Assembly: GCA_002189035.1 (NCBI GenBank)
Contig: NEEC01000017.1
Coordinates: 1,302,001 to 1,366,000 of the forward strand
Direction: 5' to 3'
DNA length: 64,000 nt
Origin: Utricularia gibba
Lineage: Eukaryota; Plantae; Magnoliophyta
Shown here: piece after piece, positions 197-49,287 of the stretch
Layout: each line of letters opens with the position of its first letter
Position numbering within the stretch: position 1 is the stretch's first letter
Notes under the pieces: generated by a model
Told to the model about the DNA's origin: nothing
Databases searched by the model: none
What the model saw: only the letters and a program-made list of their open reading frames with translations
Position numbers and translations under genes: made by a program

Positions 197-1032
197 ATGG
201 CGGTGAAGACGGCGGCGTTGGTGTTCATGTTGTGCGTCTTTGTGGCGGCGCGTGGGGAGGAAGAGGCGCCGGCCACTTCCGATGACGATAGAAATTCCGC
301 CAGTTCTTGGCGGGTTGGGCCACAAACACTTTCTCTAGGTACATAATTTTTTACTCCTCTTTTTAGTTTTTGTAATTTTGAATTAAATTAATTTATTTTA
401 GAGGAATCAACATGGGCTCGGAGGAAGCCCAGAGAGCGGCTGAGAAAACCCAGGAAGCTGCTGGAGAAGCCACCGACACCGTGAATTCAGCTACATTTGG
501 TGCATTTCTTGCTTCGTTTCATTGTATGTGATTCTGGAAGTTTGATCATTTTTTCTTTCTTCCTCTTTTTTTTCATCTCTCAGAGACGTCGAAGCAGGCC
601 TCTGAAAAAGCGAGCGACTTCGCCCAAAGCACATGGCAGAAAATGAAGCCTGAAGACCAGGACACAGGCAAACAAAACTAAATTTGTTGTGTGGTTTGCT
701 CTGAAATGGGCGCTGCACTCATTCACTAATCATGCTCTGAAACGAATAGTGGGTTGTGCTCTGTTATTGATGATGCATCTTCTGCTGCAGAAGGAACAGG
801 CCAGGGGATCAAAGATGGTGGCTCAGAGGCGTATGAAAAGGGCAAAGAAAAGATAAAAATGGCGACGGAGAAAGCTTCTGATTTGTACGAGGACGCAAAA
901 GAGAAGGTTGGGGAGACGTATGAATCCATGTCTGCAGAAGCGAGGCAAAAATATGAAGCAGCCAAAGAGAGAGCTTCACAGGCAGCAGGAGATATAGGGG
1001 CCCAAATGAGGAGGGGAAGTGCAGAATTGTGA
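197..1032 (+). CDS. Secreted LEA-type (late embryogenesis abundant) protein, 4 exons, apparent 1-nt frameshift near 310
   Basis: ATG 197, signal-peptide-like MAVKTAALVFMLCVFVAARG. Exons about 197-338, 402-499, 584-667 (GC donor), 791-1032. A/E/K-rich LEA repeats (AYEKGKEKIKMATEKASDLYEDAKEKVGETYE). The SWAGWA motif appears only if one G is added at 309-310. Confidence 0.75.
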
Positions 1033-1211
1033 GAAGTCTCTGTCTTTTGTTCATCAATAAGGTTTTGAACCACTGGAAATCAAACATCTTAGTAACATAT
1101 ATCAGATTTTGGAGTATGCATAGAAAATGATTCTCCATGGAAATCAAGTACGTTGCTTTTCAATGTACACCGTCATACCAAAAAAACAGTAAGAAGCTGA
1201 GAAATTGAAGC

Positions 1212-1710
1212 TCATCCAAAGCACTGTTCGCTGGGAAGAGGACCGGGAAGGGAACCCTGATCGAGAAACTGCAATCCAAACACCACAATTATTCCCAACA
1301 GACACAGATACGAGAGACCCTCAACGGCTCCCAGTAATCCAAATGGCCCGTTCGGAAGACCCGAACCCGTTTTGCTCTTCGTGTACAGAGACCACGCCAC
1401 GATTGCGCCAACCGTCAGAAAACTCACTCCCTCCAGCGCGCCGATTGATCCTCCAGGACCCGGAGGGAGCCCGCATCTGGTGGTCTTAAGTGTGTACAGA
1501 GACCAAACCACCACCGGGTTCGCGATTAGACCTCCTATAATGGCTGCGCTCTCCACGACGGTGGGGCTGCCGCTGCTCCCTTCGCCACGGGCCATGGCGT
1601 GAATTTTGAGGATACGGCAACGGGGAATGGATTCCGGCCGGTGCAGAAGGCGGCATAGCGACGGCAGCTTGCGATTGCGGGAATTGAAAGGGGGTTGATA
1701 GCAGCAACAT
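1212..1710 (-). CDS. Small chloroplast-type membrane protein with an internal duplicated GLPxGPxGxxGAxEG motif (resembles Arabidopsis At3g50685 as I recall it)
   Basis: ORF 1212-1595 carries WSLYTLKTTRCGLPPGPGGSIGALEGVSFL and WSLYTKSKTGSGLPNGPFGLLGAVEGLSYL and ends GPLPSEQCFG. The upstream in-frame sequence reads like a transit peptide and links to an ATG at 1710 through a frameshift in the run at 1687-1694. Confidence 0.75.
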
Positions 1711-2606
1711 TTTTTTTTCTGGATGGAGCTTGTGGCTGCGAACTGGCTGCCTTAGCTTCAGATGCGAGAGCAATGGCTACAAAAATATTAGCTTTTTATT
1801 CTTTATTTCTTTTATTGTACAGAATTACACATCGCATACATCACCCCTAATCAGATCCGTTGCCAAGATCCGAATCATCCACCTCTCACGAACTATTTAG
1901 CTACTGTATTTTGCAAACTCAGGTACAGAGTCCTCGTTCAGATCTGTCCAAGCTACATTTTTTCAACGAAAACTTTAAAAAACGGAATCTGGGTAGCAAT
2001 TTGAAGTGCTAGTTGCAGCCAGGAATGGTGAGGCAGGAGGCAACTCCACTATACGGTGTACAGGCCACGTTGCCCACCGACTCATCACGTGAACGGACGC
2101 AAATTCCTGGCTCATTTCTCGCTTATGTTCCGCTTTAATCGCGAATCGTCAATGCGTTTTGCCTTTAGTTTTAGTTTGTCATCCTCAACACGCTCCCCTG
2201 TTGGTGTCGGTCTGAAATTTCTCTCTTTTATCTCAAATCTCCAAATGGGGTTTCGTTGTTTTTCCTTTCCCTTTGATGGATGCCTCCTGTTGATAGATCC
2301 ATGTTCTTGCATTCTTGCCTAAGGATCATTTTCTGTTTGATTTGCGAATTGGGTAGGAAGTAGTTTGGTTCATCGTTTTGAATCAGTTTCGCAATTGCAC
2401 AGGGTTTTCCATCTAATTCAACTCCAAAAACAATCTGAACTTTTGCTGCGTTACATACGTTTTTGAAGGAAAATTCCATCTTTACAAGGGAAATGGGAAC
2501 ATGGGGTCAATTCTCTCGAGCTTGCAGTTTTCTTGTACAGTACAGTTTCTCATAGATGCAACATTTCTCTTTGCCGTAGGCTGTAAGAAGCTAGCTTTGC
2601 CACAAA

Positions 2607-3520
2607 ATGTCCTCCCCTAGCAAGAGGCGCGATATGGACATCATGAAACTGTGAGTATTGCTTTCCCATGGTTTTTCTTCGCTGACGCGATATGGATATC
2701 ATCTACATGACTGCAGAATGATGAGTGATTATAATGTTGAATCGGTTGATGATCGCGCAAATGAGTTCAACATAGAATTTCATGGACCCAAAGAGAGTAA
2801 TCTACCAACCTTGTCATTGTGCAAAGATGACAATTTTGTTTACCTACTGTTGCTGTCTCTTTCACTTGTTGATCACTTTCTTCTCTGCGCTGCATCTGAT
2901 TTAGGTCTGTATGAAGGTGGAGTATGGAAGGTTCGAGTTGAACTTCCTGATGCATATCCTTACAAGTCTCCTTCTATCGTGTTCGTGAACAAAATTTTCC
3001 ACCCCAATGTCGATGAACTGTAAGCTCTGCAAGTCTTTCTGTTTCTGTGTGCATCTGAGTAGCTAGCGCCTTCCTTGTCTTGATAGGTCTGGATCTGTCT
3101 GCTTGGATGTGATAAATCAGTCTTGGAGTCCGATGTTCGGTACGCACAAAGTTTGCTCGAATTCTTCTTGTCGAATCCAGGGCATATTGGTGTCTTCTTC
3201 TAATGCAGATCTGATAAACGTGTTCGAGGTGTTCCTCCCTCAACTACTGCTTTATCCAAACGCAGCAGATCCCCTGAATGGAGATGCTGCCTCCCTCATG
3301 ATCAAAGACAGGACCCAATACGAACAGAAGGTGAAGGGTATGTTCTCTACCTTGATCCTTTCTTTTATCATGGGAGCTGAGATGGTTTCGGTGATCAGAA
3401 TACTGCGAACGCTACGCGAAGCAGACTGTGGGTAACGCCGGATCGGAGGAGAGTAGCGATGAGGCAAGTGATGACGAAGAATTCAGCGACGAGGATGTTC
3501 TGGGTCATGCCGATCTGTGA
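2607..3520 (+). CDS. UBC: Ubiquitin-conjugating enzyme E2, UBC4/5/6-type with acidic tail
   Basis: [93 protein letters not shown]..; active-site Cys in SVCLDV; GT-AG introns in phase; stop at 3518-3520. Confidence 0.95.
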
Positions 3521-6710: not shown

Positions 6711-9071
6711 TCGGACGGGGGAGTGAGATGCTCCCTGTCTCCTCAAGATTGTTATCTCCACCAAATCGGACTGGTTTTCTTCTTCGTCTATGTGCAGCGG
6801 GGGAACCCTAACCCTAGATAGCTCCATTTATACAGCGAGACAGAAGATTCCTTTCAAACGTGAACCACTAAACATATTTGTTTGGCAGATATTTTTTAAT
6901 TATTCCGTTAATCACCATATTATAACACTTTTGTTCCTGTACGGAAATACCGAAAATCAATAAACAAAAAAACGAGCCATTCCTCCCGTTGCCTATTCAT
7001 GATACATCTGGTTTCATGGACTAGTCAATTCTAAATATTAAATAAGTTATAGTATACTTGTTGAAACTAAGTATCGAAGTAATTCAAATATATAAAAAAT
7101 ATAGATCACATTAGAAAAAATTATATTCAACTAATATTTAATTATTTTTTCTAATAATACTTTGTATTTTCACTTAGCTAGTATTATATTAATATCAACT
7201 AATTATCTTTATATTTCCACTAGAGTCATAAGTAACTCCCCTCACCCTATTTTAGTCTCAACTAATAATGAATTGATGGCGCCCAACTACCCTGCTTCCA
7301 AGCCTCACTTAGCGAGGGCCCACTCACTAGATTATTGGAAGACCCCTGGCCCCACACCACGTTCACTTCATTTCACCCCTCAGGACCGACGGACGACGCC
7401 GTTTCCTACAGGAGGCGACGGGGTGTTATTAAATAAAAATATAGATTATATTACATACTGTATTTCACGAATGCTTTAATTCAACTGCAAATTTGTCGTC
7501 AAAATTATTTTATTTTGCTTTTCAATCTGAAAAGGTCGACGACAATGGAATGTTTGTCGGTACTAGTAAAATTGAATTGAAAAAAAAATAAGATTATAAA
7601 TTGAGCATCAATTATGTCATTAATATAAATAATAGCAACTGTTTTTTTTATTTTTAAATAATAGAAATCAATTATAAATGGTTTTGCGTAGCTGAGGGGT
7701 CAATGAGATGGGGCCCATGCTTCACCATTTAAAATAATGATATAATAACCAAAAATACGTAAGCCATGCCATGCATGCGGTGTTGGGTTGTGGGGGAGGC
7801 CCATGTGAAGTCATGGGCCCAATCCTCTCCCTGCTGCAGGCCCAGCAGCTGGTGGATGGGTCCTTTTGTCCCCAGTAGGAAGGACATGAGATGGGGGTAG
7901 GGGGCCAGGGGCTCCAATGATGCGGCTCTGCTTGGCCCAGCAGCTGCTTCCATTCAAAGCATTTATGGGTCCGGGTCCGGGTCCGGGTTTTGTCCATGTA
8001 ATTTGGTCCACTCCCGAGTTTACATCAACCATTTGGTCCAATCGTACCGCATCACTTCAAATCACATTACGCCCATCATAATCACCCTGTACTGTGTGGT
8101 TCCACAAGCCCAACCACCTGATTTTTATGACCTCCATTAACCCACAAACGAGTAACCAACCCCTGTTTTTTTTTAATCCCATATATATGGAGTTACTTAA
8201 AATTACTTCCCTATTTAACTTTACTTAAAACCAATAATTCTATTTTTAATTTCAATAACTAAACACTACTTAAAATTTAATACCAATATATCAAATTTAT
8301 TTAAATCTAAATAAATTAAACTCATTTTATCTCATTGCTCTCAATTAATACACTTAGATTATATTTGATAATATAGTATAAAATCACATAAATTATTGTT
8401 TTATTAACTAATATATATCTATATACAAACTGATTATATCATTCATATACTTATTTTTTAAGTATGTCAATAATATACATAAAATAAAAGAAATTCATAT
8501 ATTAATATTTCTATTTTTGAATATTAAACGTTATATAAAGTTGAGTATATATATATATATACTCAATTACAGTATACTTAAATATACTAATATTCTAATT
8601 TCAAACAATTTCTAATTATATGGATGAGTGCCCCCATGGATGGTGTGACGGTTGAGACGTTATGAAACCGGCCATTTGAATATAAAGATGACCCGATCCA
8701 CGACAACGACTCCCCACAAATCAAATTCCCACATTGAAGACAAATGTATGCAGCAGAGTGTCAATGCCCGTGGATGCGGTCCTTTTTTTCTTTTTCTTTT
8801 TTTGTTTTTTTAAATATAATTAAAATTAAAATTCAATTCTAAATTTAATAGTAATAATAATAATAATAATAATATAATAATTGAGAGAGACAAGAAAAAA
8901 CAGCATTAAATATATCTCAAGGGTGCCGTGGTAGGGAGGTAGGAAGGGGAGAAGGGACTCCTCCCCTTTTATTTAATGTCTGCTACCTAATAGTAACTGC
9001 ATGCATTTAATTAATTAGCCAACAAGCGCCACATTTTCTTGTATAAGATGGATTAATTAGCATAATCCCCC

Positions 9072-12447: not shown

Positions 12448-12970
12448 AATTTATAGATTTAGCCCATTCCATAACCTGATTTAAAACAATTTTGATTTAA
12501 ATATATATTTTTCGATCTTGAGTGATATAACGAGTATGAAATATCATTTTTTATAATTTTGATAAAAAGCCCGGAGAATATGTAACAGAAATAAAAAATA
12601 TATTTTTATCTTAATAACTAATTTTAATTGTTATTTATATATTAATATAATAAAAAATAAATGGATAAAATGAATTTATAGGTATTAATTTAAAATGGAT
12701 TCAAATTTAAATTCAATTTGTTGGGAGAGGCGCGGGCCGGGTCGGATTCCATACCCGATGGGTACAATATTCGAAAATTGAAGTTTCGTCCACAAAAAAG
12801 GAATAAATAAAAAAAATGATTCTGAATGTCGAGTTGGATGGATGTGGCTTCTTTGGTGACGACACGTGGCGGTATTTTGTTGAGGGAAATTGCTTTTTCG
12901 CGCTTTTTCAGCCACAAAGCCCTTTCTACAAATGGCCGACTCATTCGGCACTCGGCAGTAAGCCTCCCAT

Positions 12971-13020
12971 CCTCCTCCTTCTTCTTCTTCTTCTTCTTCT
13001 TCTTCCTCGTCGTCGTCGTC
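12971..13020. repeat. (CTT)n/(GTC)n microsatellite in the probable MADS 5' leader
   Basis: cctcctccttcttcttcttcttcttcttcttcttcctcgtcgtcgtcgtc. Confidence 0.85.
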
Positions 13021-13488
13021 ATTGGCGGAGCTGCAGCTTCTCGCCCTCCGCTTTCTTCTCCGGATTCGCGTCAAGTGAAACCTCGACAGGGGCTTTAAGT
13101 TTCCGCGTGAAACGGGCGTGTCGGCGATTTCAAGGCTTTGTGTTGTGCTCGCTCGCTGTAGCTTGGAAGCCGGAGTGTTCTCCGGAAAGTCGACGTGCGG
13201 GAAAATATTTTTCTTTATGTTAATTTGTAGCATGCCTGTTTCCTAGGGTTCTTTTTATTTGAGATGGCGCCGCGCCCTTTGTTTTCATGACTGACGTAGA
13301 GAAAACCGGTATCACACCATAAACCAAAACTTCGCCTTGCAAAAAGGGTTCGGTGTGGAACGCAGATAGAGCCATGATCTTGCTACACTTTTTTAAAAGC
13401 CCAAATCCTCACAAGTCCACACATCATTTGTATTGCTTCGTGATGTTCAGGACGATTCGTGATTAACTGTCGTTGGTTATTGTTCAGG

Positions 13489-16400
13489 ATGGGCAGAGAG
13501 AAAATCGAGATCAAGAAAATAGGCAACTTGGCGGCGAGGCAAGTGACCTTTTCCAAAAGACGTCAAGGTCTAGTAAAAAAAGCTCGTGAACTTTCAGTTT
13601 TGTGCGAGGCTGAGGTGGCAGTCATCGTTTTCTCTCAAACGGGGAGGATCTACCACTACTCCAGCTCCGAGTAATGCACTTTTTGTTTGATCTTGTCCCA
13701 TGTTCTGTTTACTGCAAAGATTGGGTTTTTGTGTGAATTCATTCCCATATTCATGATTTCTAGCTTGAACCCCTCTATGGTAAAACTGATCCTCGTTGGC
13801 AGAATATTTGCTGACGCCTCTTGTGCTGTGGCCATGGAATTATGTTTTGGCAGATTAGAACCAAACACTGTGGATTTTTGTAGTCAAAAATTTTAGAGCG
13901 TTGATGGATATCTTGATGATGGTTCTGTGATAATACTTGCTTGTTTGCATAACTTTTGCTGTCCTACTTGATTAATTTGATGGAATAAGGAGTCTAGTTT
14001 GCTGTAGATCCTGACATGTAAAAAGTTGGAATGGGGAATAAGGATTATGAAATCGTTAATAGAAACAGAAAAGATTCACAAAGCTCCATTGAGATCATGA
14101 AAACGCTATCCATAACAAGGATTCTAGATACTTTCTGTTGATACCCGACAGAAGAGAAGATAGGATGTGATGTTGATTAATTGTATTGTAATGTGTCCAG
14201 GTGAAGATGCTGAAGAAATGCTTTTTGAATGCCACCAATAACTTTGTCCCATGCATAAAAAAGTATATAGAAGAGTTTTTTGGTCATTTAATTCTCAGTG
14301 AGTATAACAAACATTATCTGTTTCTTAATAAGGTGTCATTTTTCACGATGAAAGGCTGAAGGGGCTTCTGACAGGTACGAAGTGCTGCTTTCAGAACTTC
14401 TTTGGCCTTTTGACATTTTCCATATAAAATAGTCATGATACATTTCCATGGAACAGGTTTGCATCTTTGTTCAAAAAAAAAAAAAAAATTAGAAAGAAAA
14501 AAAGTTGTGTTGGGGTAGTAGCGTGTGTGGAAGCCCTTTTCGTCCACAGGAACCAGAAAGCTAGAGTTAGGAAAATGACCAACACCTTACTATTGTTTCT
14601 TGTCTGTTCTTTTCTTTTAGACACTCACACATACACATGCTCTGAAGCTCATTCAAGAACTGACCCTCCTTCAGTGCTCATGCTTCACCATTTAGCAGTT
14701 GCCATGTTTGCTGCCATGAACTAAATCTAACCTGCAGCAGTAACAGATGTCAATCCTAAATTCCAGTAGAAAACATGCTCCATTTTTTACAAGTTCAAAT
14801 TTTTTATGTGACAAAAGCAATTGCCTATTTATTCATCTTTCATGTTCCTTAAAAACAGATTTCCATGGCCATGTTGGAAATTTACGAAGCACATCATTCT
14901 GTCAATATGCTACTGTTAGATAATATTTTTTCGATGTTAATTTGTCTGTTAATTTCTGAAGCATTGATGAAACGCTCAAACAATTTTCTGTGCACTTGGA
15001 CTCGGAGCGGAAACTGGTAGGATTTACTTGTACGAGTTGGGAATATTTTATTCATGATCCTACACTTTAAGCACATAAGCACTTGCATGGTATTCAAGAC
15101 AGTGAGTCAACTTAAGGATACTTTCAGAGTTCTCGAAATGCATCAGCTCAGAATAGTTATGAAAACTTCAAGCATCTACTATCAAAATTCTTTAACTGGG
15201 AAGATGCTATCAATATTTCAAGAACTATATTGTGCCTGAAGTCATTGAAATAGACCTTTAGGCCTAGATTTGTATTCACCTGACTGATACTATTCTCAAC
15301 CAAGACATTTAAACAAATAAAAAGAGATAGCTAAAAAAGAACAGGGCACAAGTTACCTATTGTGGCATCTTGTCCACCATATTTTTGATGCCTGTATTTG
15401 CTTTCAGGTACAGAATCAGGTTCAGCTGAGTACAGATGTTGAGGATAAAATAAATTACCTGAGGTATGATCCCAGGAATTCTCACCAGGGTACTGAAGCT
15501 ATTGAAATTCATATTAACATCCATCCATACAGGAAAATCACTGAAAATCCTCATAAGTTTGGTGAAGAAGAAGTCAACAAGCTAGAGGTGAAGCTTGAAG
15601 AAATACTTACCGGCTTGAAGAACAAAAAGGTTCTTCCCTCGAACTATGCAAATTACAGTCAATTACTAAAATGAAGTTGCCGTTGATATGAATCTTCAAT
15701 TTTGATTCCAGCGAGATGTTCTCATGAGTGAAGTGCCTGCCCTTCAATCAAAGGTGGGTTTACAGCAAAATGCCATCTGCATAAAATGTTGATTGTAAAA
15801 GAGCCTAAATCACCTAAACGATGAAGTTGAAGATGGCTGTTCAATCTTAGATAATTTGGAAGCATTAAAAAACCTTTAGAGCAGTGGAAAGATAACTCCT
15901 CCTTTGAATCATTTCAGGATCCCTGCACCTACAATGCTGCTAGAAGTCAACCGGGAGAGTTAGCTGCTGATGCAGTCACTGAATTCGGTTCCGGAGAACC
16001 TTATTTTTCATACTACCAACTACAAAATGTTCTATCCAACCAACCTGATTCTCCCGGAAGGTGGTCTCCCCCACCTCCAAGTACTTACAAGGTGAATTTC
16101 AGTGGAGCAAACTTTGGTGCTTCCGGGGTTGGAGCGGGAGTTGTGATCCGGAACTGGAAAGGAGAATTTATGGCTGCTCTAGCGAAGTTCTCACCGGAGT
16201 TAATGGACTACAGCAGCACTTCCTTCTTTGCTGCAAAATGTGCTCTAGAATTTGCTGCCGGTTACTCCTTCACTGACATCCTGGTGGAAGGGGATTGCCC
16301 AAGTGCCATCAACCGGCTACAGAGTATCCATGAAGATCTGCCTCTCGCATCCACCAAAGACATGCTAGATGCTAAGACTTGGATGATGCAATTCAGAAAA

Positions 16401-16547
16401 TGCATGTTTTTGCATATACCAACAACAGGAAACATTGCTGCATACATGATGGCACAGTATGCAAAAAATGTTCCCGATGAAGATGTCTGGCTAATCAAAG
16501 AACCTGACTTCCTCGCTGACATCCTTTTGGCTGATCAAACCCCATGA
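13489..16547 (+). CDS. MIKC-type MADS-box transcription factor (AGL15/SVP-like MADS domain) predicted to be fused to a C-terminal RNase H-like domain, about 353 aa
   Basis: Exons 13489-13670 (182 nt; [49 protein letters not shown]), 14962-15016, 15408-15463, 15533-15629 (K-box like), 15712-15753 (42 nt) and 15918-16547. All phases are compatible with GT-AG introns. Confidence 0.8.
15918..16547 (+). other. RNase H-like (RVT_3, plant LINE-type) domain exon, catalytic residues degenerate
   Basis: [67 protein letters not shown] matches the plant RNase H pattern WxPP..KxNxDGA..GxVxRD..VExDC..F.HV.R..N..AH.LA. The frame is open for 630 nt from the TTTCAG acceptor at 15917. Confidence 0.85.
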
Positions 16548-17587
16548 TGCTCCTTCCACAAGAGGCCCCTTTCCGTGACGCCCAAAAGACCCTTTTTGCA
16601 GCAAACCATACAAGTACAAGTGTCAGTTCATAATGAGAAAATGATCTCAGTCCCAAGTCCCTGTTACCGGTCCCTCCCGCCGGCTGGTTGCCGAGAGAAA
16701 ACAGCGAAATCAAGCAGTCATGACCCAGCTACACGTTTAGTTTGGAACATCCATGGACATGAGCAGCAAGTTCACTTTTGCACACATACTTTACAGGCCG
16801 CCACCTCTTCATCACACGTAAGGAACCTGATTCCCTTTCCTCGCACAGCACGTGGTGGTGACTCTTGAGCATTGAACAAAGAAACTCTTACCTTTTCACC
16901 TTTTCGCTCCTTGTCTTATTGCTCCACTTTCGCTCCTGATTCCATTTTATGAAACAATATGATACTACCATCAAATTTTGATTGTACAGGTCCCACATCA
17001 AATTCCTGATTAAAACGTTTTATAAATTACTATTAATATTTAAGAAAATATAAATTTGGAGCAACCTAATGAAACGTTAATGGTTTTAATATTTAGAGGA
17101 TATTTGATAGTTGAATATAAAAGATTTATATTTAAATTTACATATATAATAATGTTTAATTAATTAATATATGTATGTCAACCTTATATGGCTATATCAC
17201 TCACATACTTATTTTTTAAATATATGAATGATACATGCAAATGAAATGAGGGGGAAGGGGAGGGGAAGGGAGTAGGAAGTTAATTATATATATGTTACTT
17301 ATATAAATTTTTATTATCGGATATCAAATGTTATATATAATTAATTATGTATACACAATTGCGTTATACTTAAATATATTAATATACTATTATCTAACGA
17401 ACTCATAATATTATATTAATTTTTGGTTTTCTATAATTTTTTTAAAAGATAAATTTTCGTAGGCCAATTTCTTTATATTTATGGGCCGTGGAATCCAGAG
17501 AGGCCCAAAAGGCCTGGATCCGTATTGTGTGCTTGGATTCAACGCAGCGCAGGTATATTACTTGTGGTTGCTGCTTGAAAAAAAGAA

Positions 17588-20578
17588 TTACAGGTCCAGA
17601 AACTGAACAACGTCCTTGTTCCCTCCAACCACAGACAGAACAGTCCCTGCAATGTGCCTTGGGGTGAGCCCGGCTTCTTCCATCTGGTCGCTCTGCGCGC
17701 CGTGGTCGATGTATCGGTCCGGTAGCATCATCGCCCGCCACTGCCGGACAATGGATGCGTTTCGTTAGGAAAATCTGTCCTGTTAGCATGAGATGTTAGG
17801 AGGCTGACTGACCTTGAGCTTGCCGTCGAGTAAGCCGTTCAGACTCAAGAAATGGGAGACATGGGAGCTGAATCCTCCGATGGATCCTTCTTCTACAGTT
17901 AGGAGAAACTCGTGCTCCTTGGCTAGCCGGCGGATCAAGTCGCCATCTAGAGGCTTGCAGAATCGGGCATCGGCTACCGTCACTGAAACGCCGTGATCTT
18001 GGAGAATTCTTGCGGCAGCTAGGCAGTTTTGTACGATTATTCCGAAGCCAAGGATTGCAACTCTGGTTCCCTCCCGCAGGATTCTTCCCCTGCCGATCTG
18101 TGCAGAAAGGACAGTTCTTGGGATGAGAGATTCATGTTGCTCCGTGAAGATGGATGTGACGGCGTACCTCCAAGGGAGAGCCCTTGTTGTCAGGAGGAAG
18201 AGGAGCTCCGACGCCGTTGCCACGAGGGTATCTGACGCAGCTCGGGCGGTCGTCGATCGCGGCTGAGGTAGCAATCATGTGCATCAGCTCAGCCTCGTCA
18301 GATGGAGCCATGACGATCATGTTAGGCAAGCAAGCCATGAAAGTAGTATCAAAGGCTCCACAGTGGGTAGGACCATCGGCTCCGACGAGCCCTGCACGAT
18401 CCATCATGAATCTCACCGGCAGCTTCTGAAGGTCCACGTCATGAACCACCTGTAATCCAGGGACGCTGTTGCTGACTCTTCCATCAGCAGTAAAAATGTG
18501 CAGAAACTACTCAGTGACTTACCTGATCGTACCCCCGCTGAAGAAACGATGAGTATATAGCGCAGAATGGCCTCAAGCCTTCAGTGGCCATGCCAGCTGC
18601 GAAGGTGACTGCGTGCTGCTCAGCAATTCCGACATCGAAACATCGCTCAGGGAAACGTTTCTGGAAAATGTTTAGTCCAGTGCCACCACCCATGGCGGCG
18701 TGGATGGCCACGATCTTGTCGTCCACCATTGCCTCAGCCGCTAAGGAGTGTGCGAAATACTCCGTATAGGAAAGCGTCGCCGATTTGCTTTTGGATTGCC
18801 GCCCTGTTTTAGGATCAAACTTCACCACCCCTGCAGCAACATGATCCAGCTTCAGAATGCAACCAGAACGTAACCCATGAGGAATTTTACGAATAAGTAC
18901 CGTGCATCTTATCAGCAGCAGCTTCCGCCGGCGGATACCCTTTCCCCTTCTCAGTTAAAATGTGTATCATCACCGGTCCCGGTGCCGGCATCTCCTTAAC
19001 CCTACTGAAAATGTAAACCAGATCCTCAATGCTGTGACCGTCAACCGGGCCGATGTAATAAATCCCAAGCTCGTCAAAGAAACATCCTCCGCCGCCAGTT
19101 ATCATTCCTTTGAAGTGAGCATCGACCTTAGCAGCGACATTGTGAACCTGACTCCCCATTCTTTTGGTCATATCCTGCATCGAAAATTATATTCACACAC
19201 CACAGACGTGGAAACAGGTGGGATATTCAAGTTTACTTCTCCTACCTTCGCGGCCTCACGGAGGAGACGGAACTCCCCGTTAGCTTGTAGCCTAGTAAGC
19301 GCCTTGCTCAGTGCCCCCACCGGCGGAGCCGGGCCGTCGATGGTGGCAGTGGGAAGCGAAACTTGCTTATTGTCATTCAAAACAATTATCAGATTGGAGT
19401 CAAGATATCCAGCGTTGTTCATCGCCTCAAAGGCTTGCCCCGCCGTCATGGCCCCATCGCCGATCACCGATATCACGTGGTTTTCTTTGCCCAGCAGATC
19501 CCTCGCCACCGCCATTCCTAATTATAAAATAAACCACATAAATACTTTCACTATACTATAATTTTTTAATCCATTACTTACCCAATTAATTAAATTAACG
19601 TAAATATTTTCTTGAAATATTCTGCTACTTATTTAAATAAAAAATAAATCAATAAAAAATACGATATTTTTGTCTGATTAAAAAAAAAAAAGGCATGCAC
19701 CTAAACCAGCAGAAATGCTTGTGGAGCTGTGACCAGCTCCAAAGGCATCATGCACACTCTCATCCCTTTTGGGGAAACCAGCCAGCCCAAAGCTCTGCCT
19801 GATTGTCTGCATCCTCGACCTCCTCCCGTCAGAATCTTGTGCCCATACGCCTGTCGACATGAGCAGACAACAGGCGTCAATATGCACACAGATTCAGCAA
19901 GATTTGTGTGTTTTCTGTCAAGAGTTTCTTTCCTCTGTGCTGGATCTTGAGTTACGAAGGGTTTTGGGGAGGGTGATTTACCTGATGGCCAACGTCCCAT
20001 ATGATTTTATCTGATGGAGAGTTGAAGACATGGTGAAGTGCGATGGTGAGCTCAGCGACGCCGAGGCTGGAGCTCAAGTGCCCTCCGGTTTTAGAAACTG
20101 CGTACACTATGTCTTCCCTGAGCTCATCCGCCAGCTTCTCCAGATCCTGGAGCAAAAGCATGCATGATTCTAGTAACCGGAGCTTTGCTGTTTTCGAATA
20201 GTCTGTTAGTTACAGACACACGACGCAGATCACCGGAACTACCTCCACAGACAGGTTCTTCATGTGAATGGGGTGGTTGATGGTATCCAGAACCGGAGTC
20301 ACCGGCTTTTCTCCAGTGAATCGGAGAGACGCCGGCGGCCCTCCGCTGGACTTCTTGACGATCGCGTCTTCGTTCTCCTCCGTGTTACTGTGCTGGTGAA
20401 CCGCTGAAATCCCCCATGACTGAAACCAAAGCCACAAGGTAAGAAACCAGACAGAGAAACCTCTGGGAAGAAAGAAACCAAAAAGATCAACCTTTTGTCT
20501 TTGAGTAGTCGGAGAGGAGTCATGGGACTGGAGAAGGGAGAAGAAGCTGTTCCTGAGAATCCCACAGGAAGCCGCCAT
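17588..20578 (-). CDS. DXS: 1-deoxy-D-xylulose-5-phosphate synthase, clade 2-like, 10 exons, apparent 1-nt frameshift at about 19826
   Basis: Transit peptide [12 protein letters not shown]; [40 protein letters not shown], ThDP motif [46 protein letters not shown]; stop at 17588-17590. Confidence 0.95.
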
Positions 20579-24054: not shown

Positions 24055-25321
24055 TCATCTTCTTCCTGTTCCTCCTCTGCGGCTGTGGGTCATCGGAGCC
24101 AAGTAGAATCGCAGCAACCCACTATCGATCTCGCAATGTGGGTAGGGGTGTGAGTGTCTCAGGCTCCTTTTCGCATCTCGCTTGTGGAGTAATCTGGCGG
24201 TGTTGTTGGAGGTTTTAGTTCTGTTCACTCCATTTTCTGTGGTAGGCGACTCCAGTTCTTTGTTCCCAAGGCCCAGTAAGCGCCAGCTCCACCATTTTCT
24301 CGGTCCCTTGACGCCATCTCTAGATTCTTTTGCTCCATGGAAGTAATCTGCACTTGTTGGGGAAACTCTGGCGTTTGACTTTTTGGTTTCATCGATCTCT
24401 GAGACCTGTGACTTCCTGACGGAATTTGACCGTTCGAGAACCTTTTTTCTTCTGTGAGAAGATGAATCGGCGTAGTACTCCCGCGTCTGGGCTGAGCCGC
24501 CGGGGACGCTCTCCGCCGTGTCGCATTCCGCTGGCATTCGGTGAGAGTTTCTCCTTATGATGTACCCATCCCAAGAAGCTCGCGGCGCCTCCAATGCAAG
24601 CCTCAGATCCATGTCGCAGGATCTTCTTTTGAAGGGGAAATCAGCGATTTCAAACTGGGTTTCGATGTGGCCCCGGGAAATCGGCTTCTCCGGTTGGAAG
24701 TTACTCTGTTTCTTCGTCTTCTGGATTCTCCCCCATTTCTGCAATTTTTCTGTGAAAATCGAAGCCGCAGCCCAAATCCCACCTCTGGAACTCCTTTTAC
24801 CCGCGGGGTCTTCTACAATTTCACCCCCGTTAACATCAGTTTCCACAGAGGATGCTAATTTCTCCAAATGGGTATCCACAGATCCCCGCATTTCGCCATT
24901 CTCGCAATCATGCCCAGAAGCAACATCTACAGGATCCCCAAAACCAGACCCAATATTGCAGAAATTCTCATTACAACAAGAACCCAGATCGCCACTCTCA
25001 TCATTAAGCGTGAACAGAGACAAGAGAGTGCTCACATTACCATCCCTTCCTCTGACATCACAAGATTTCCTCTGGGGCACAAACGTCAACCCCAAACTCT
25101 CATTCTTTGAAACGGAAAAGGATTTCGTGCGTCGTATCGGAGCATCCAAGGTTGAGGATCTGGGACAATCGGAGGTAGGGACGACGACGAGGAGGAGTTA
25201 TCAAGAGAACTGAGACGCTCGCAGAGACAAGAAGGACAGAACCCAGTAAACTTCTCCCCGGGTGCCGGCGGCAATTGACCAACGAGCGCGGCGGAGGGCG
25301 CGAAGACAAAATGGGATCCAT
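24055..25321 (-). CDS. OPS-like: OCTOPUS-like (DUF740) protein, single exon with two apparent 1-nt frameshifts
   Basis: MDPILSS..CRRHPG/EKFTGFCPSCLCERLSSLD/..IRRTKSFS..PQRKSCDVR..GGIWAAASIFTEKLQKW..RRSCD..EAPRASWDG..GLLRFYLAP. The three reading frames join if one base is added at 25256-25259 and one at 25178-25180. Confidence 0.85.
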
Positions 25322-32390: not shown

Positions 32391-34867
<2,477 letters not shown>

Positions 34868-35456: not shown

Positions 35457-36029
35457 TTAGCAGTATTCCAGAGGGTGAGAATGGAGATACATCTCAACAG
35501 CATTGAACAGCTCCTTGGACTTCGTTTTCCCTTCCTTGATCTTTCCCTCCGTGATCTCGCCGCCGTCCATCACATACCACACGCTCCTAGACTTGACGAC
35601 GGACTCGGAGCCGGCGCCGGCGCCGGCGCCGCCCTCGATCTTCACCGTGGTCTCCACCTTCTCCAGCCCTGCAAGTGCATCACCGGCGACCACGACGTAC
35701 TTGAACACCATCTTCTCCTCATCGAGTTCATCCACCACGTACCTTGCTGTACTGTAGCTGCTCCCTGAAAGCAAACCAAACCAACAAATCAACATCAAAG
35801 TACCTTGCTGAATATGAATCTTTAATATATATATACCTTCCCCGAAGGTGATCAGCTTGATGGAGCCGGCGCCGCCGTCTCCCTTAAGGAGCTCGATGCT
35901 CTTGAAGGCGGCCGGGACGGCCCTGGGGAGGAGGCTGTCTCCGCCGAGGATGAAGGCTTTGAACAGCCTCTCCGGCGCGACGGAGCAGTGGACTTCTTCC
36001 TCACACTCGATCATCTTCATCATGCCCAT
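35457..36029 (-). CDS. PR-10 / Bet v 1-like protein, 2 exons
   Basis: MGMMK..EEEVHCSVAPERLFKAFIL..AFKSIELLKGDGGAGSIKLITFGEG; intron 35765-35836 at the usual PR-10 position; ends LFNAVEMYLHSHP. Confidence 0.9.
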   Translation of the reverse strand: MGMMKMIECEEEVHCSVAPERLFKAFILGGDSLLPRAVPAAFKSIELLKGDGGAGSIKLITFGEGIYILKIHIQQGTLMLICWFGLLSGSSYSTARYVVDELDEEKMVFKYVVVAGDALAGLEKVETTVKIEGGAGAGAGSESVVKSRSVWYVMDGGEITEGKIKEGKTKSKELFNAVEMYLHSHPLEYC

Positions 36030-37399
36030 GACTTTGCGAACACGCATGAAACAGAAGAATGTGCAGAACCAGGCGCACGACGCCTCCATTTATAGGTTAC
36101 ATGTTACCGTGTTGGCTGACCATTCTTTTTCTTGGTTCCCAGTTCCCACACATTGGTGACTTTTTCTGATTTCTTTTCCAACATATAATATATAATATAT
36201 TATTCTCCCCCTGAAATTGGTGCATCATGAATTCTAGGTTTACACTGAAAGTCAAAGGAGGACTAACAGATTAATTGAGATTTTGTATTTTAATTTGATC
36301 GGTTAATTAAGATTTTTTAATAATTTTTATTTTAATAAATAAGTCGACTAAAAAAATCTAAAATTAATGTATATATTAATAGATTAAACTTGGATTTGGT
36401 TGGTAAAAATAGAGGGTTATATTGAATTATGTTACATTTAGAAAAATTAATCTAAAATTGATTTTAATAAAATTGAAGATTATATTAGAATTGATATATA
36501 TTTAGAATTATTTTTTAAATAAAATTTTATATTCTTTTTTCATCCGTCATTTTTAGGTTTTTCAATATGTTTTGACAGATTTTTATTAATTTATAAAAAT
36601 AGAAAATATCATTTACGTCCATGCTTTTTTTATTTCTAGAATTTATTTAGCAAAATATTAAATGATACATATTTTATTATTATAAATTAAATACCTAAAT
36701 ATTTTTATTTAGTTCTTTATTTATTTGTAAAATATAAATTCATGTATTAGGTAGACTTAATTAATTTCATAATAATAAAATGCAATATTATTTTTATTTC
36801 AAAAAATTATCCTCAATTATTATATAAAATCTAATTATAAAATTTATATCATGTATATAATCAATAATTATTTCTTGAATAATAGTCTATATAAAACATT
36901 TTCATGTTTTTTTAAATAATTCATTTTTATGTAAATTAATTTTATTGTATTTAATTTGAAATGAATCAAAACATCATACTAAAACAATCTTTAAATTTTG
37001 ATATTTTCTAAGAAAATAAATTTTTCCTACAAAAAAAGAAAGGAAATTAAGGTGTGATTACTGCTGGATTAGAGGTTTAACCGGGCTGGGTCCCACCTTA
37101 AACCTCTACTTTTTCATTTCTTGGTACGCTTTTCATCTTACAGCACCGCTAGGTATCCGATCGCGCGCCGCCGCGCGGCTAAATATAACACGATCACCTA
37201 CGGCTAATTCTTCCACTCTAGGGGGACAGGACTCGTGCGTTCTTCGTTTCACTGCGTATTTTTGGTGCAGCGTTCATTTTTCGGCATCTTAGGTTGCCCG
37301 AGTTGTTTTTATTTTTTACATTTCGATGTCCTGTGTGATAATGCGTATGTGAAGATATTCTGATCCCTAACCCGAGCAGCGATTTCATGTGGCCAGAGT

Positions 37400-47461: not shown

Positions 47462-49287
47462 ATGGGGGAGGTATTCGTTTGCCTCATCTTTGTATCAGCT
47501 TTCTTAGGCTGCTCCTCCGCAGCCCAGGTTTCGAATTTCGGGGGCTCATGGATCGTGCACTCGGAGAATGCTGGGGTTTCCGCCATGCACGTCCAGCTTA
47601 TGCCTAACAACAAGGCAGTATGGTTTGATTCCACCAGCAACGGTCTGTCGGAAATTCAGAACAACCCGCCGTTCTGCCGGCCGCGGGTGGGTGGCAGAGT
47701 TCGAGATCCTCCGGAAGATTGCACCGCCCACGCGGTGGAGTATGACATCGAAACGGCCCAAGTTCGACCCTTGAAGGTTTGCGCCGTTTGTAGCAACGTC
47801 GAACCATTTTCAGGGGAACATCACCGTTTCATGACTGGCTTGCCTTTACCCAGGTGGAGACGAGCCCGTGGTGCTCCTCCGGTGGCTTGAACAGAAATGG
47901 CGACCTGATATCCACCGGCGGGGACAAAGACGGTTTCAAATCCATCAGAATCCTGAAGCCCTGCGACGGCTGCGACTTCCAAGAACGGCCGAGAGGCCTA
48001 TTCAACAACCGATGGTACGCGACCCAAACCGCTCTAGAAGACGGCAGTTTGGTGGTCCTCGGCGGCCGCGACGCCTACAACTACGAGACCCTCCCGCCGG
48101 ATTTCGAATCCGGATTCATCACTCAGCCGATGGAGCTTCCTCTTCTCGAGGAAACCAGCGACGACGGCGGCCGGGAAAATAACCTATTCCCCTTCGTCAA
48201 TCTTCTCCCCGACGGAAATCTATTCGTTTTCGCCAACTACAAGAGCATCATTCTCAATCCTCGCACCGGAGAAACTGTACGGGTTCTTCCAGACCTTCCC
48301 GGAGGTTCCAGAAATTACCCGCCCTCCGGCATGTCGGCGCTTCTTCCGATAAATCTCGATATCCCGATGGTGCTGTTCCTCAGGCCGAGGTTCTAGTTTG
48401 TGGAGGTAAACCCCGTTCCCAAATCCATGGTAGAAAAATATCAACTTTTTGTTAATAACCCGATTCTTGCAGGCAACACACGAGAATCATACATATGCTC
48501 CGATCTACGACTGCCAAACAGAACATTTTTACCGGCGGCGACGGACTGCGGACGTCTGATACTCACCGGAGAAGAAGAATCCCAATGGCAGAAAGAGGAA
48601 ATGCCATCACCACGCGTGATGGGCGACATGCTTCTTCTCCCCACAGGAGACATACTTATGATCAACGGAGCCAAGGCAGGAACTTCTGCTTGGAACGCTG
48701 CCGACTTGCCTAATCTCACCCCTGTTCTCTACACCCCAACCGCTCCAATCGGCCTCCGCTTCCGCGAGCTCACGCCGTCGACGATTCCACGAATGTACCA
48801 CTCCGTCAGCGTCGTCCTCCCCAGCGGAGAAATCCTAGTTGCCGGTAGCAATACCAACGCATTCTACATGATGCAAAAGTACCGCGATCGTTTCAAGTTT
48901 CCGACGGAACTGAGGGTCGAGAAGTTCTCTCCGCCGTACTTGGATCCGGCGCTGCAACGACACCGCCTTAGAATCGTGGAAGAGGAGTCGGATAAGGAGT
49001 TGACATATGGACAACAGTTTAGGATCCAGATTGAACCAAGGAACCGGAAGATGGGGAGGAGGGCGGTGAAGGTGACGATGTACGGGCCGCCGTTCACAAC
49101 CCATGGCTACTCTATGAGCCAGAGATTGTTGATCTTGAAGGTGAGATCACTAGACCAGGGACTCGTCACCGCTGTAGCGCCGATGACGGGGACACTTGTG
49201 CCGCCGGGGTACTATCTCTTGTTCGTTAATCACCGGGGAGTTCCTAGCCGTGGGATGTGGGTGCGCATTGATCACAGGATTTGGTAG
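47462..49287 (+). CDS. GLOX: Secreted glyoxal oxidase / galactose oxidase-like copper radical oxidase, 3 exons, apparent 1-nt frameshift at about 48364
   Basis: Signal peptide; GVSAMHVQL, PWCSSG (cofactor Cys), RWYATQ (Tyr), RMYHS, FTTHG; C-terminal PGYYLLFV. Introns about 47776-47853 and 48406-48472. AEVLVCGG is restored by adding one C at 48363-48365. Confidence 0.9.

Follow-up and report, generated by a model that had tools for sequence, protein, structure and literature searches.

Few plant regulators have been studied as much as MIKC MADS-box proteins, whose M-I-K-C layout is, to our knowledge, very stable. The K3 segment and the C domain of these proteins serve tetramer formation and the recruitment of partners and cofactors. 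Here, we analyzed a gene of Utricularia gibba in which exactly this part appears to have been exchanged. The gene lies on the plus strand (13489-16547) of a 64,000-nucleotide stretch of assembly GCA_002189035.1 (contig NEEC01000017.1, positions 1,302,001 to 1,366,000), which is called the window hereafter and to which all positions refer. We consider it likely that the locus, expressed and correctly spliced, belongs to a gene family of Lamiales in which an RNase H-like exon replaces the K3 end and the C domain behind an SVP-like M-I-K core and persists as an exapted, dead module; the identity and conservation of the gene, taken as a part of this explanation, are in our view very probable. A first-pass annotation of the sequence had proposed that a domesticated RNase H takes over from the MADS C-terminal part, a proposal that gains support from the RNA junction, from an exon boundary shared with relatives and from purifying selection.

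Exon structure and transcription of the MADS-K-RNase H gene

The coding region consists of six plus-strand exons, all with canonical AG and GT borders, which join to 1062 nt, corresponding to 353 codons with no internal stop (Table 1). The exon layout and the open frame of the MADS-K-RNase H gene are thereby confirmed. The coordinates and lengths in the first-pass annotation are all correct, but its description of the exon sizes as canonical holds only in part: the usual sizes in MIKC genes are about 80, 62-65 and 100 nt, and exons 2-4 (55, 56 and 97 nt) fall somewhat below them. Exon 6 (15918-16547, 630 nt including the stop codon) encodes a linker and an RNase H-like domain, together 209 residues. 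Its first in-frame methionine is residue 85, inside the RVT_3 domain, in agreement with the earlier remark that no ATG precedes the middle of the domain.

Four public runs of the same organism cover the locus (X1, X5, X6 and X7) and were taken as RNA-derived, since introns with GT..AG ends are missing from their contigs. Joints with these ends were found at each of the five coding introns, among them that at 15753>15918, the junction for which a check at the RNA level had been suggested. In X1, this fusion joint is found on a contig of 1060 nt, which holds 42 letters of exon 5 and continues with 15918-16933; further sense joints of the same run connect the 5' untranslated region (UTR) exon with exon 1 (13194>13488) and exons 2 to 5 with one another (15016>15408, 15463>15533 and 15629>15712). 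The k-mer depth in X1 is comparable between the contigs of the MADS exons (12.7-27) and the contig of the RNase H exon (17.9). One X7 contig passes from 13670 straight to exon 2 and skips the stop-containing 42-nt exon listed in Table 1, while the X5 contig ends in a poly(A) tail at 16845 that belongs to the RNA and not to the genome.

The locus is also covered by antisense spliced RNA, with CT..AC joints at 14730>15356, 15735>15813 and 16371>16504 (X1, X5, X6 and X7; three studies). They could arise by read-through of the convergent DXS gene or represent independent antisense RNA.

Table 1 Coordinates of the MADS-K-RNase H gene, the overlapping antisense transcripts and further features of the window
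Feature	Positions	Strand	Evidence or remark
5' UTR exon	13050..13194	+	X1 and X5 contigs join 13194>13488, GT..AG; left end undefined, contigs extend beyond 13050
Exon 1, coding part, 182 nt, MADS (SRF-TF) from ATG	13489..13670	+	Pfam SRF-TF; SVP-clade profile nodes 1-60; donor used in X1, X7
Alternative 42-nt exon with in-frame stop, possible poison exon	14333..14374	+	X1 joints 13670>14333, 14374>14962
Exon 2, 55 nt, I region	14962..15016	+	X7 contig goes from 13670 to exon 2 directly; X1 joints; SVP profile
Exon 3, 56 nt, K1	15408..15463	+	X1 joints 15016>15408, 15463>15533; SVP profile
Exon 4, 97 nt, K2	15533..15629	+	X1 joints; SVP profile
Exon 5, 42 nt, first K3 exon, last MADS-derived exon	15712..15753	+	X1 joint 15629>15712; SVP profile ends here, node 155/226
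Exon 6, first part, linker of ~46 residues	15918..16055	+	Joint 15753>15918 in the 1060-nt X1 contig, which has 42 nt of exon 5
Exon 6, second part, RNase H-like (RVT_3) domain, C-terminal beta-alpha tail and stop codon	16056..16547	+	Pfam RVT_3; AlphaFold2; Foldseek
3' UTR to poly(A) site	16548..16845	+	X5 contig ends at 16845, then A12; one X1 contig reaches 16933
Overlapping antisense spliced transcript(s)	14577..16649	-	Minus-strand introns 14731-15355, 15736-15812, 16372-16503
Convergent DXS gene	17445-20578	-	Transketolase_C 17786-18274, DXP_synthase_N 19171-19515
DUF740 gene piece	24058-25149	-	
Protein kinase exon	33058-33684	+	
Bet v 1 family exon	35460-36089	-	
Galactose-oxidase-like E-set domain	48400-49284	+	

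The last exon encodes an RNase H-like domain with a lost active site

Residues 71-182 of the 209 residues encoded by exon 6 match the Pfam family RVT_3 (PF13456) with an E-value of 1.5e-14 and 54.4 bits (cut-off 21.6). The AlphaFold2 model of the exon, built from a 60-sequence alignment, reaches a predicted local distance difference test score of >95 for residues 50-209, whereas residues 1-24 stay below 50; the linker has predicted disorder at residues 1-30 and a short helix at 32-40. The top matches of a Foldseek search in the PDB are type 1 RNases H, the best one being the Halobacterium RNase H1 (4e19, template modelling score 0.87 by target, E 1.9e-8). The domain is thus predicted with confidence to fold as an archaeal-type RNase H. 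Titles reportedly use the term 'Archaea-like RNase H' for plant L1 elements, which agrees with an archaeal RNase H1 as the best structural match.

The four active-site positions of the window protein are occupied by Ser (for the first Asp), Ser (for Glu), Asp and Tyr (for His). The first two replacements are common to the whole family: the column of the first Asp holds Ser, Ala or Thr in 9/9 fusion domains compared to Asp in 49/51 generic RVT_3 domains, and the Glu column holds Ser, Thr or Cys in 9/9 fusion domains compared to Glu in 48/51 generic ones. The second Asp (present in 51/51 generic domains) and the His (48/51) are each kept in 8/9 fusion domains, with the window protein being the one with Tyr at the His position. 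As two of the four catalytic residues are lost in every member, the domain should not be able to act as an RNase H and, judging from these residues, is catalytically dead across the family; the losses most likely predate the diversification of the family. The earlier description of a complete RNase H-like domain behind a linker therefore stands for the fold and the linker of about 46 residues, but not for the active site, where 2/4 catalytic residues are missing. The family domain has a mean net charge of -10.7 and an isoelectric point of 4.7, compared to -4.8 and 5.7 for generic LINE (long interspersed nuclear element) RNase H domains. A homodimer prediction for the domain scored 0.00, which is evidence neither way.

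An SVP-type core without the K3 end and the C domain

Exon 1 matches the full Pfam model SRF-TF (PF00319, positions 1-48) with an E-value of 3.9e-25. For the remaining MADS-derived part, a profile of the SVP clade with 226 nodes was built from 101 SVP, AGL24 and JOINTLESS proteins. Residues 1-144 of the spliced protein align to nodes 1-155/226 of this profile (E about 1e-47), covering the M and I regions, K1, K2 and the first K3 exon, and the alignment ends exactly at the border of exon 5. Within it, residues 61-144 correspond to nodes 61-155, that is I and a K-box of which K3 is only half present. The Pfam K-box model scores 35.1 bits in the Buddleja ortholog introduced below (threshold 30) and stays below threshold in Primulina and Andrographis.

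Nothing in the protein corresponds to nodes 156-226, which represent the second K3 exon and the C domain. At the DNA level, the SVP profile found no remnant of these exons with E <1 past node 155, neither in 15754-17450 nor in five orthologous loci, as had been expected from the earlier claim that no conventional MADS C-domain exon precedes the convergent DXS gene. Among the matches listed for the Buddleja ortholog, the best ones outside the fusion family are all SVP, JOINTLESS or AGL24, and every non-fusion protein named after a clade is one of these, an SVP-like rice-type MADS22 or a dormancy-associated MADS protein. From best hits and profile, we infer that the parent gene was an SVP/StMADS11-like MIKC MADS-box gene.

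A conserved gene family in Lamiales

A word-based protein search with the last exon gave no hit, which we attribute to a failure of sensitivity, because an exhaustive HMMER search found the family. The best match of the latter is a protein of Buddleja alternifolia (368 aa, E 5.9e-49, 51% identity) with MADS at its start and RVT_3 at its C-terminus. Used as the query of a second search, this protein recovered eight clusters with PF00319 and PF13456, five of which also contain PF01486. The combination of SRF-TF, K-box and RVT_3, for which an architecture search had been proposed, is shared by Buddleja and other Lamiales proteins. Besides Buddleja alternifolia, the fusion members come from Primulina eburnea (two loci), Primulina tabacum, Henckelia pumila and Andrographis paniculata, and two further ones are transcript contigs with uninterrupted open reading frames (ORFs) of 331 and 357 aa.

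Genlisea aurea holds a further member, which is split in its annotation. Its 'partial' RVT_3 protein is 59% identical to the window exon, and all six exons are present on one strand at 849-3260 of the 10.6-kb contig KE526773.1, where the gene is annotated as an SRF-TF protein of 61 aa and a separate partial RVT_3 protein of 169 aa. The named fusion species belong to four families (Scrophulariaceae, Gesneriaceae, Acanthaceae and Lentibulariaceae), all of them Lamiales. A profile search, which covered shorter proteins only, revealed no further clear members outside this Lamiales group; its scores fall from 268 bits (Genlisea) to 124, followed by generic RVT_3 proteins with ~32-36% identity.

All annotated orthologs share the start of the last exon, which lies at the same residue, right after the L-Q-[ST]-K end of exon 5. 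Exon 5 (42 nt) is missing in one of the two transcript contigs of the family and most of the linker in the other, and thus alternative splicing near the fusion junction occurs in other family members as well. In databases, the fusion proteins are present under automatic names ('hypothetical protein', 'uncharacterized protein', 'MADS-box transcription factor 47-like', '18-like'), as the first-pass annotation had allowed for when it left room for uncharacterised entries. Just upstream of the fusion gene on Primulina eburnea CM040892.1, a degenerate RNase H-like fragment was observed at 7961-8555 in two ORF pieces, and it looks like the relic of a tandem duplicate.

Probable origin from a LINE ORF2 and selection on the domain

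By sequence comparison, the last exon corresponds to the C-terminal RNase H portion of RVT_3 proteins, a group that includes many ORF2 fragments of non-long-terminal-repeat (LINE/L1-type) elements. The more distant RVT_3 hits of the same search carry RVT_1 and zf-RVT in the layout of a LINE ORF2, and this, together with the RVT_3 match itself, speaks for the LINE-type origin suggested earlier. The domain has both the W-x-P-P lead-in and the conserved C-terminal tail. In some generic hits, the alignment begins at about residue 17-30 of the exon, and therefore the captured piece probably included ORF2 sequence ahead of the domain. Elsewhere in the window, there is no other reverse transcriptase-like or RNase H-like match. 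Inspection of the sequence revealed no genomic poly(A) tract directly after the stop codon, and no search was directed at target-site duplications.

In a maximum-likelihood tree of 60 RVT_3 domains, the nine fusion domains form one clade (support 100/100) on a long stem of 1.03, and the window domain is sister to that of Genlisea (98/78). Its terminal branch (0.56) is not unusually long compared to those of Genlisea (0.46) and Andrographis (0.52). This topology suggests a single capture before the sampled Lamiales families diverged.

Selection on the last exon was assessed by the ratio of non-synonymous to synonymous substitution rates (dN/dS) according to Nei-Gojobori. Between families, the dN/dS of the domain is 0.10-0.21 at saturated synonymous sites (dS >1.5), and we therefore rely on the comparisons within Gesneriaceae, where it amounts to 0.21-0.38 at a dS of 0.09-0.34. 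These values, obtained as had been proposed for the last exon, indicate that the RNase H-like domain is under purifying selection. For the linker, the unsaturated pairs within Gesneriaceae gave a dN/dS of 0.4-1.0. Accessions of the window species differ by 3 variants in the MADS exon and 2 in the RNase H domain, all of them synonymous, and by 1 synonymous and 2 non-synonymous variants in the linker. In the I and K region, a single transcript pair differs by 9 non-synonymous and 2 synonymous changes, which are too few to interpret. The single copy in its context, the orthologous position of the exon and the purifying selection together argue for a part of a host gene and not a transposon.

Genomic context

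The 3' end of the convergent DXS gene lies about 0.9 kb from the stop codon of the MADS gene. The fusion loci of Buddleja, Primulina and Henckelia have a downstream Flavoprotein gene in common, which is absent from the window and from Genlisea; the neighbours of the Genlisea locus differ. No flanking ORF of the Buddleja, Primulina, Henckelia or Genlisea loci matches the window, and the position next to DXS, proposed as a synteny check, is shared by none of the four. A GAA/GAC-type simple repeat at 12960-13030, just upstream of the 5' UTR exon, gives rise to spurious acidic and basic ORFs on both strands. Further genes and gene pieces of the window are listed in Table 1.

Possible function and alternative explanations

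According to the scenario we favor, an SVP-like gene would have captured an RNase H exon once, before the split of the sampled Lamiales families. The captured domain would then have lost two catalytic residues and been kept as a globular domain, compact and acidic, that is attached by a flexible linker. The protein would still bind CArG-box DNA and dimerize via its M, I and K regions, and the pseudo-RNase H domain would represent a new C-terminal module, most likely a protein-interaction or regulatory surface. Such a module could take over or alter the formation of higher-order complexes and the recruitment of cofactors, which normally depend on K3 and C. A role of the pseudo-RNase H as a non-catalytic interaction or regulatory module has, in our estimate, about an even chance of being correct.

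Several observations weigh against an expressed and functional fusion gene with an SVP-like parent. In this genome, the 15753>15918 junction is seen in one assembled contig from one study (X1), and contigs give no isoform proportions. An X1 isoform includes the 42-nt exon at 14333-14374, and its translation ends after 66 residues, just past the MADS domain. The X5 contig starts at 16081 behind 24 unmatched letters and could mark a separate 5' end; these letters match nowhere in the window, even when 3 mismatches are allowed, so that no upstream alternative exon was recognized, and the 24-mer may be adapter. Since antisense spliced RNA covers the RNase H exon, a part of the X6 and X7 coverage is not sense mRNA. 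In addition, the window copy is not syntenic with the loci of Buddleja, Primulina or Henckelia and could be a redundant copy. It also has Tyr at the position where 8/9 family members keep His, and its K1 region is shorter. Finally, the placement in the SVP clade comes from best hits and a profile and not from a tree with other MIKC clades.

One alternative is that the dead domain still binds RNA:DNA hybrids and thereby tethers or directs the MADS factor to R-loops, or senses them. Catalytic carboxylate mutants of RNase H1 are known to keep hybrid binding, and the losses in this family are limited to the catalytic carboxylates, with the second Asp remaining in 8/9 members. The predicted fold is intact and nearest to true type 1 RNases H, and the purifying selection shows that some function remains. 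However, the markedly acidic character of the family domain mildly disfavors binding to nucleic acids, and the archaeal-type fold comes without a separate hybrid-binding domain, which makes hybrid binding unlikely in our view. We also regard as rather improbable the more specific idea of an SVP-like MADS protein whose recruitment or regulation depends on R-loops or nascent antisense RNA at its target genes, with the dead RNase H as hybrid reader. If true, an R-loop role would tie the MADS network of flowering and dormancy directly to co-transcriptional RNA structures.

The window copy could also be a redundant and decaying paralog, which is transcribed and spliced but gives rise to hardly any functional protein or none, for instance if the stop-containing exon leads to decay. 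This exon is indeed included in X1 contigs, and the lack of synteny shared with the loci of other families, the change from His to Tyr and the shortened K1 would fit such a fate. In contrast, the 353-codon frame and every splice site are intact, an X7 contig skips the poison exon, and the variants between accessions comprise 6 synonymous versus 2 non-synonymous ones, with both of the latter in the linker. The terminal branch of the window domain is also near those of Genlisea and Andrographis. Decay of the window copy thus appears quite unlikely. Highly improbable is a third reading, in which the RNase H exon mainly belongs to a separate transcription unit or an antisense one and the fusion is a rare read-through isoform: the X5 contig (16081-16845) with its poly(A) tail and unmatched 24-nt 5' end and the antisense spliced contigs over the exon in X6 and X7 would be compatible with it, but the exon has no in-frame ATG before its residue 85, and splicing does use the acceptor at 15918. 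At least six further species or transcripts show this junction in their annotation or assembly, the frame of linker and domain is conserved, and the 24-mer, absent from the window, is possibly adapter.

Significance of the MADS-RNase H family

Among the hits listed by full-text searches, with subscription-only literature outside this scope, no title or abstract deals with MADS or MIKC proteins that bear an RVT_3 or RNase H-like domain. PF13456 was named beside MADS only in a list used for filtering out transposon genes (PMC8641386). The window gene is a new member of an existing, uncharacterised family, which itself appears to represent an undescribed variant of the MIKC architecture that has seemingly never been studied.

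If the exapted module is read correctly, then in a whole lineage, represented by at least five plant lineages of the order Lamiales, a globular domain of transposon origin has taken the place of the C domain and the end of the K domain and has been retained by selection after the loss of its enzymatic residues. The family would offer a natural experiment on how the C-terminal module shapes the formation of MADS complexes, as well as a well-dated case in which a transposon domain was exapted into a transcription factor. It further points to an annotation problem, as the gene models are split in Genlisea and bear 'uncharacterized' or rice MADS names elsewhere. Annotation pipelines that discard RVT_3 genes as transposons (PMC8641386) would lose the fusion gene altogether.

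Comparison with known systems

Among known systems, the proteins of the StMADS11 clade (SVP, AGL24 and JOINTLESS) resemble the window gene in the MADS signature MxREKIxIKKI.., the I region, K1, K2 and the first K3 exon, and the five coding introns of the window gene lie at the boundaries between the M, I and K regions. Unlike these proteins, the window gene has no second K3 exon and no C domain but a 209-residue linker and RNase H-like domain instead, and its I and K1 exons are shorter than usual. The RNase H of plant L1/LINE ORF2 is similar to the fused domain in its RVT_3 match, the W-x-P-P lead-in, the C-terminal tail and a predicted fold nearest to archaeal RNase H1. In contrast to ORF2, the fusion gene has MADS exons upstream and neither a reverse transcriptase nor zf-RVT, and the first Asp and the Glu are replaced in all members of its family. 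Stand-alone or fused plant RVT_3 proteins ('RNase H type-1 domain-containing protein') belong to the same Pfam family and share 25-36% identity with the domain, but they keep the catalytic Asp and Glu in ~95% of cases and fall outside the fusion clade.

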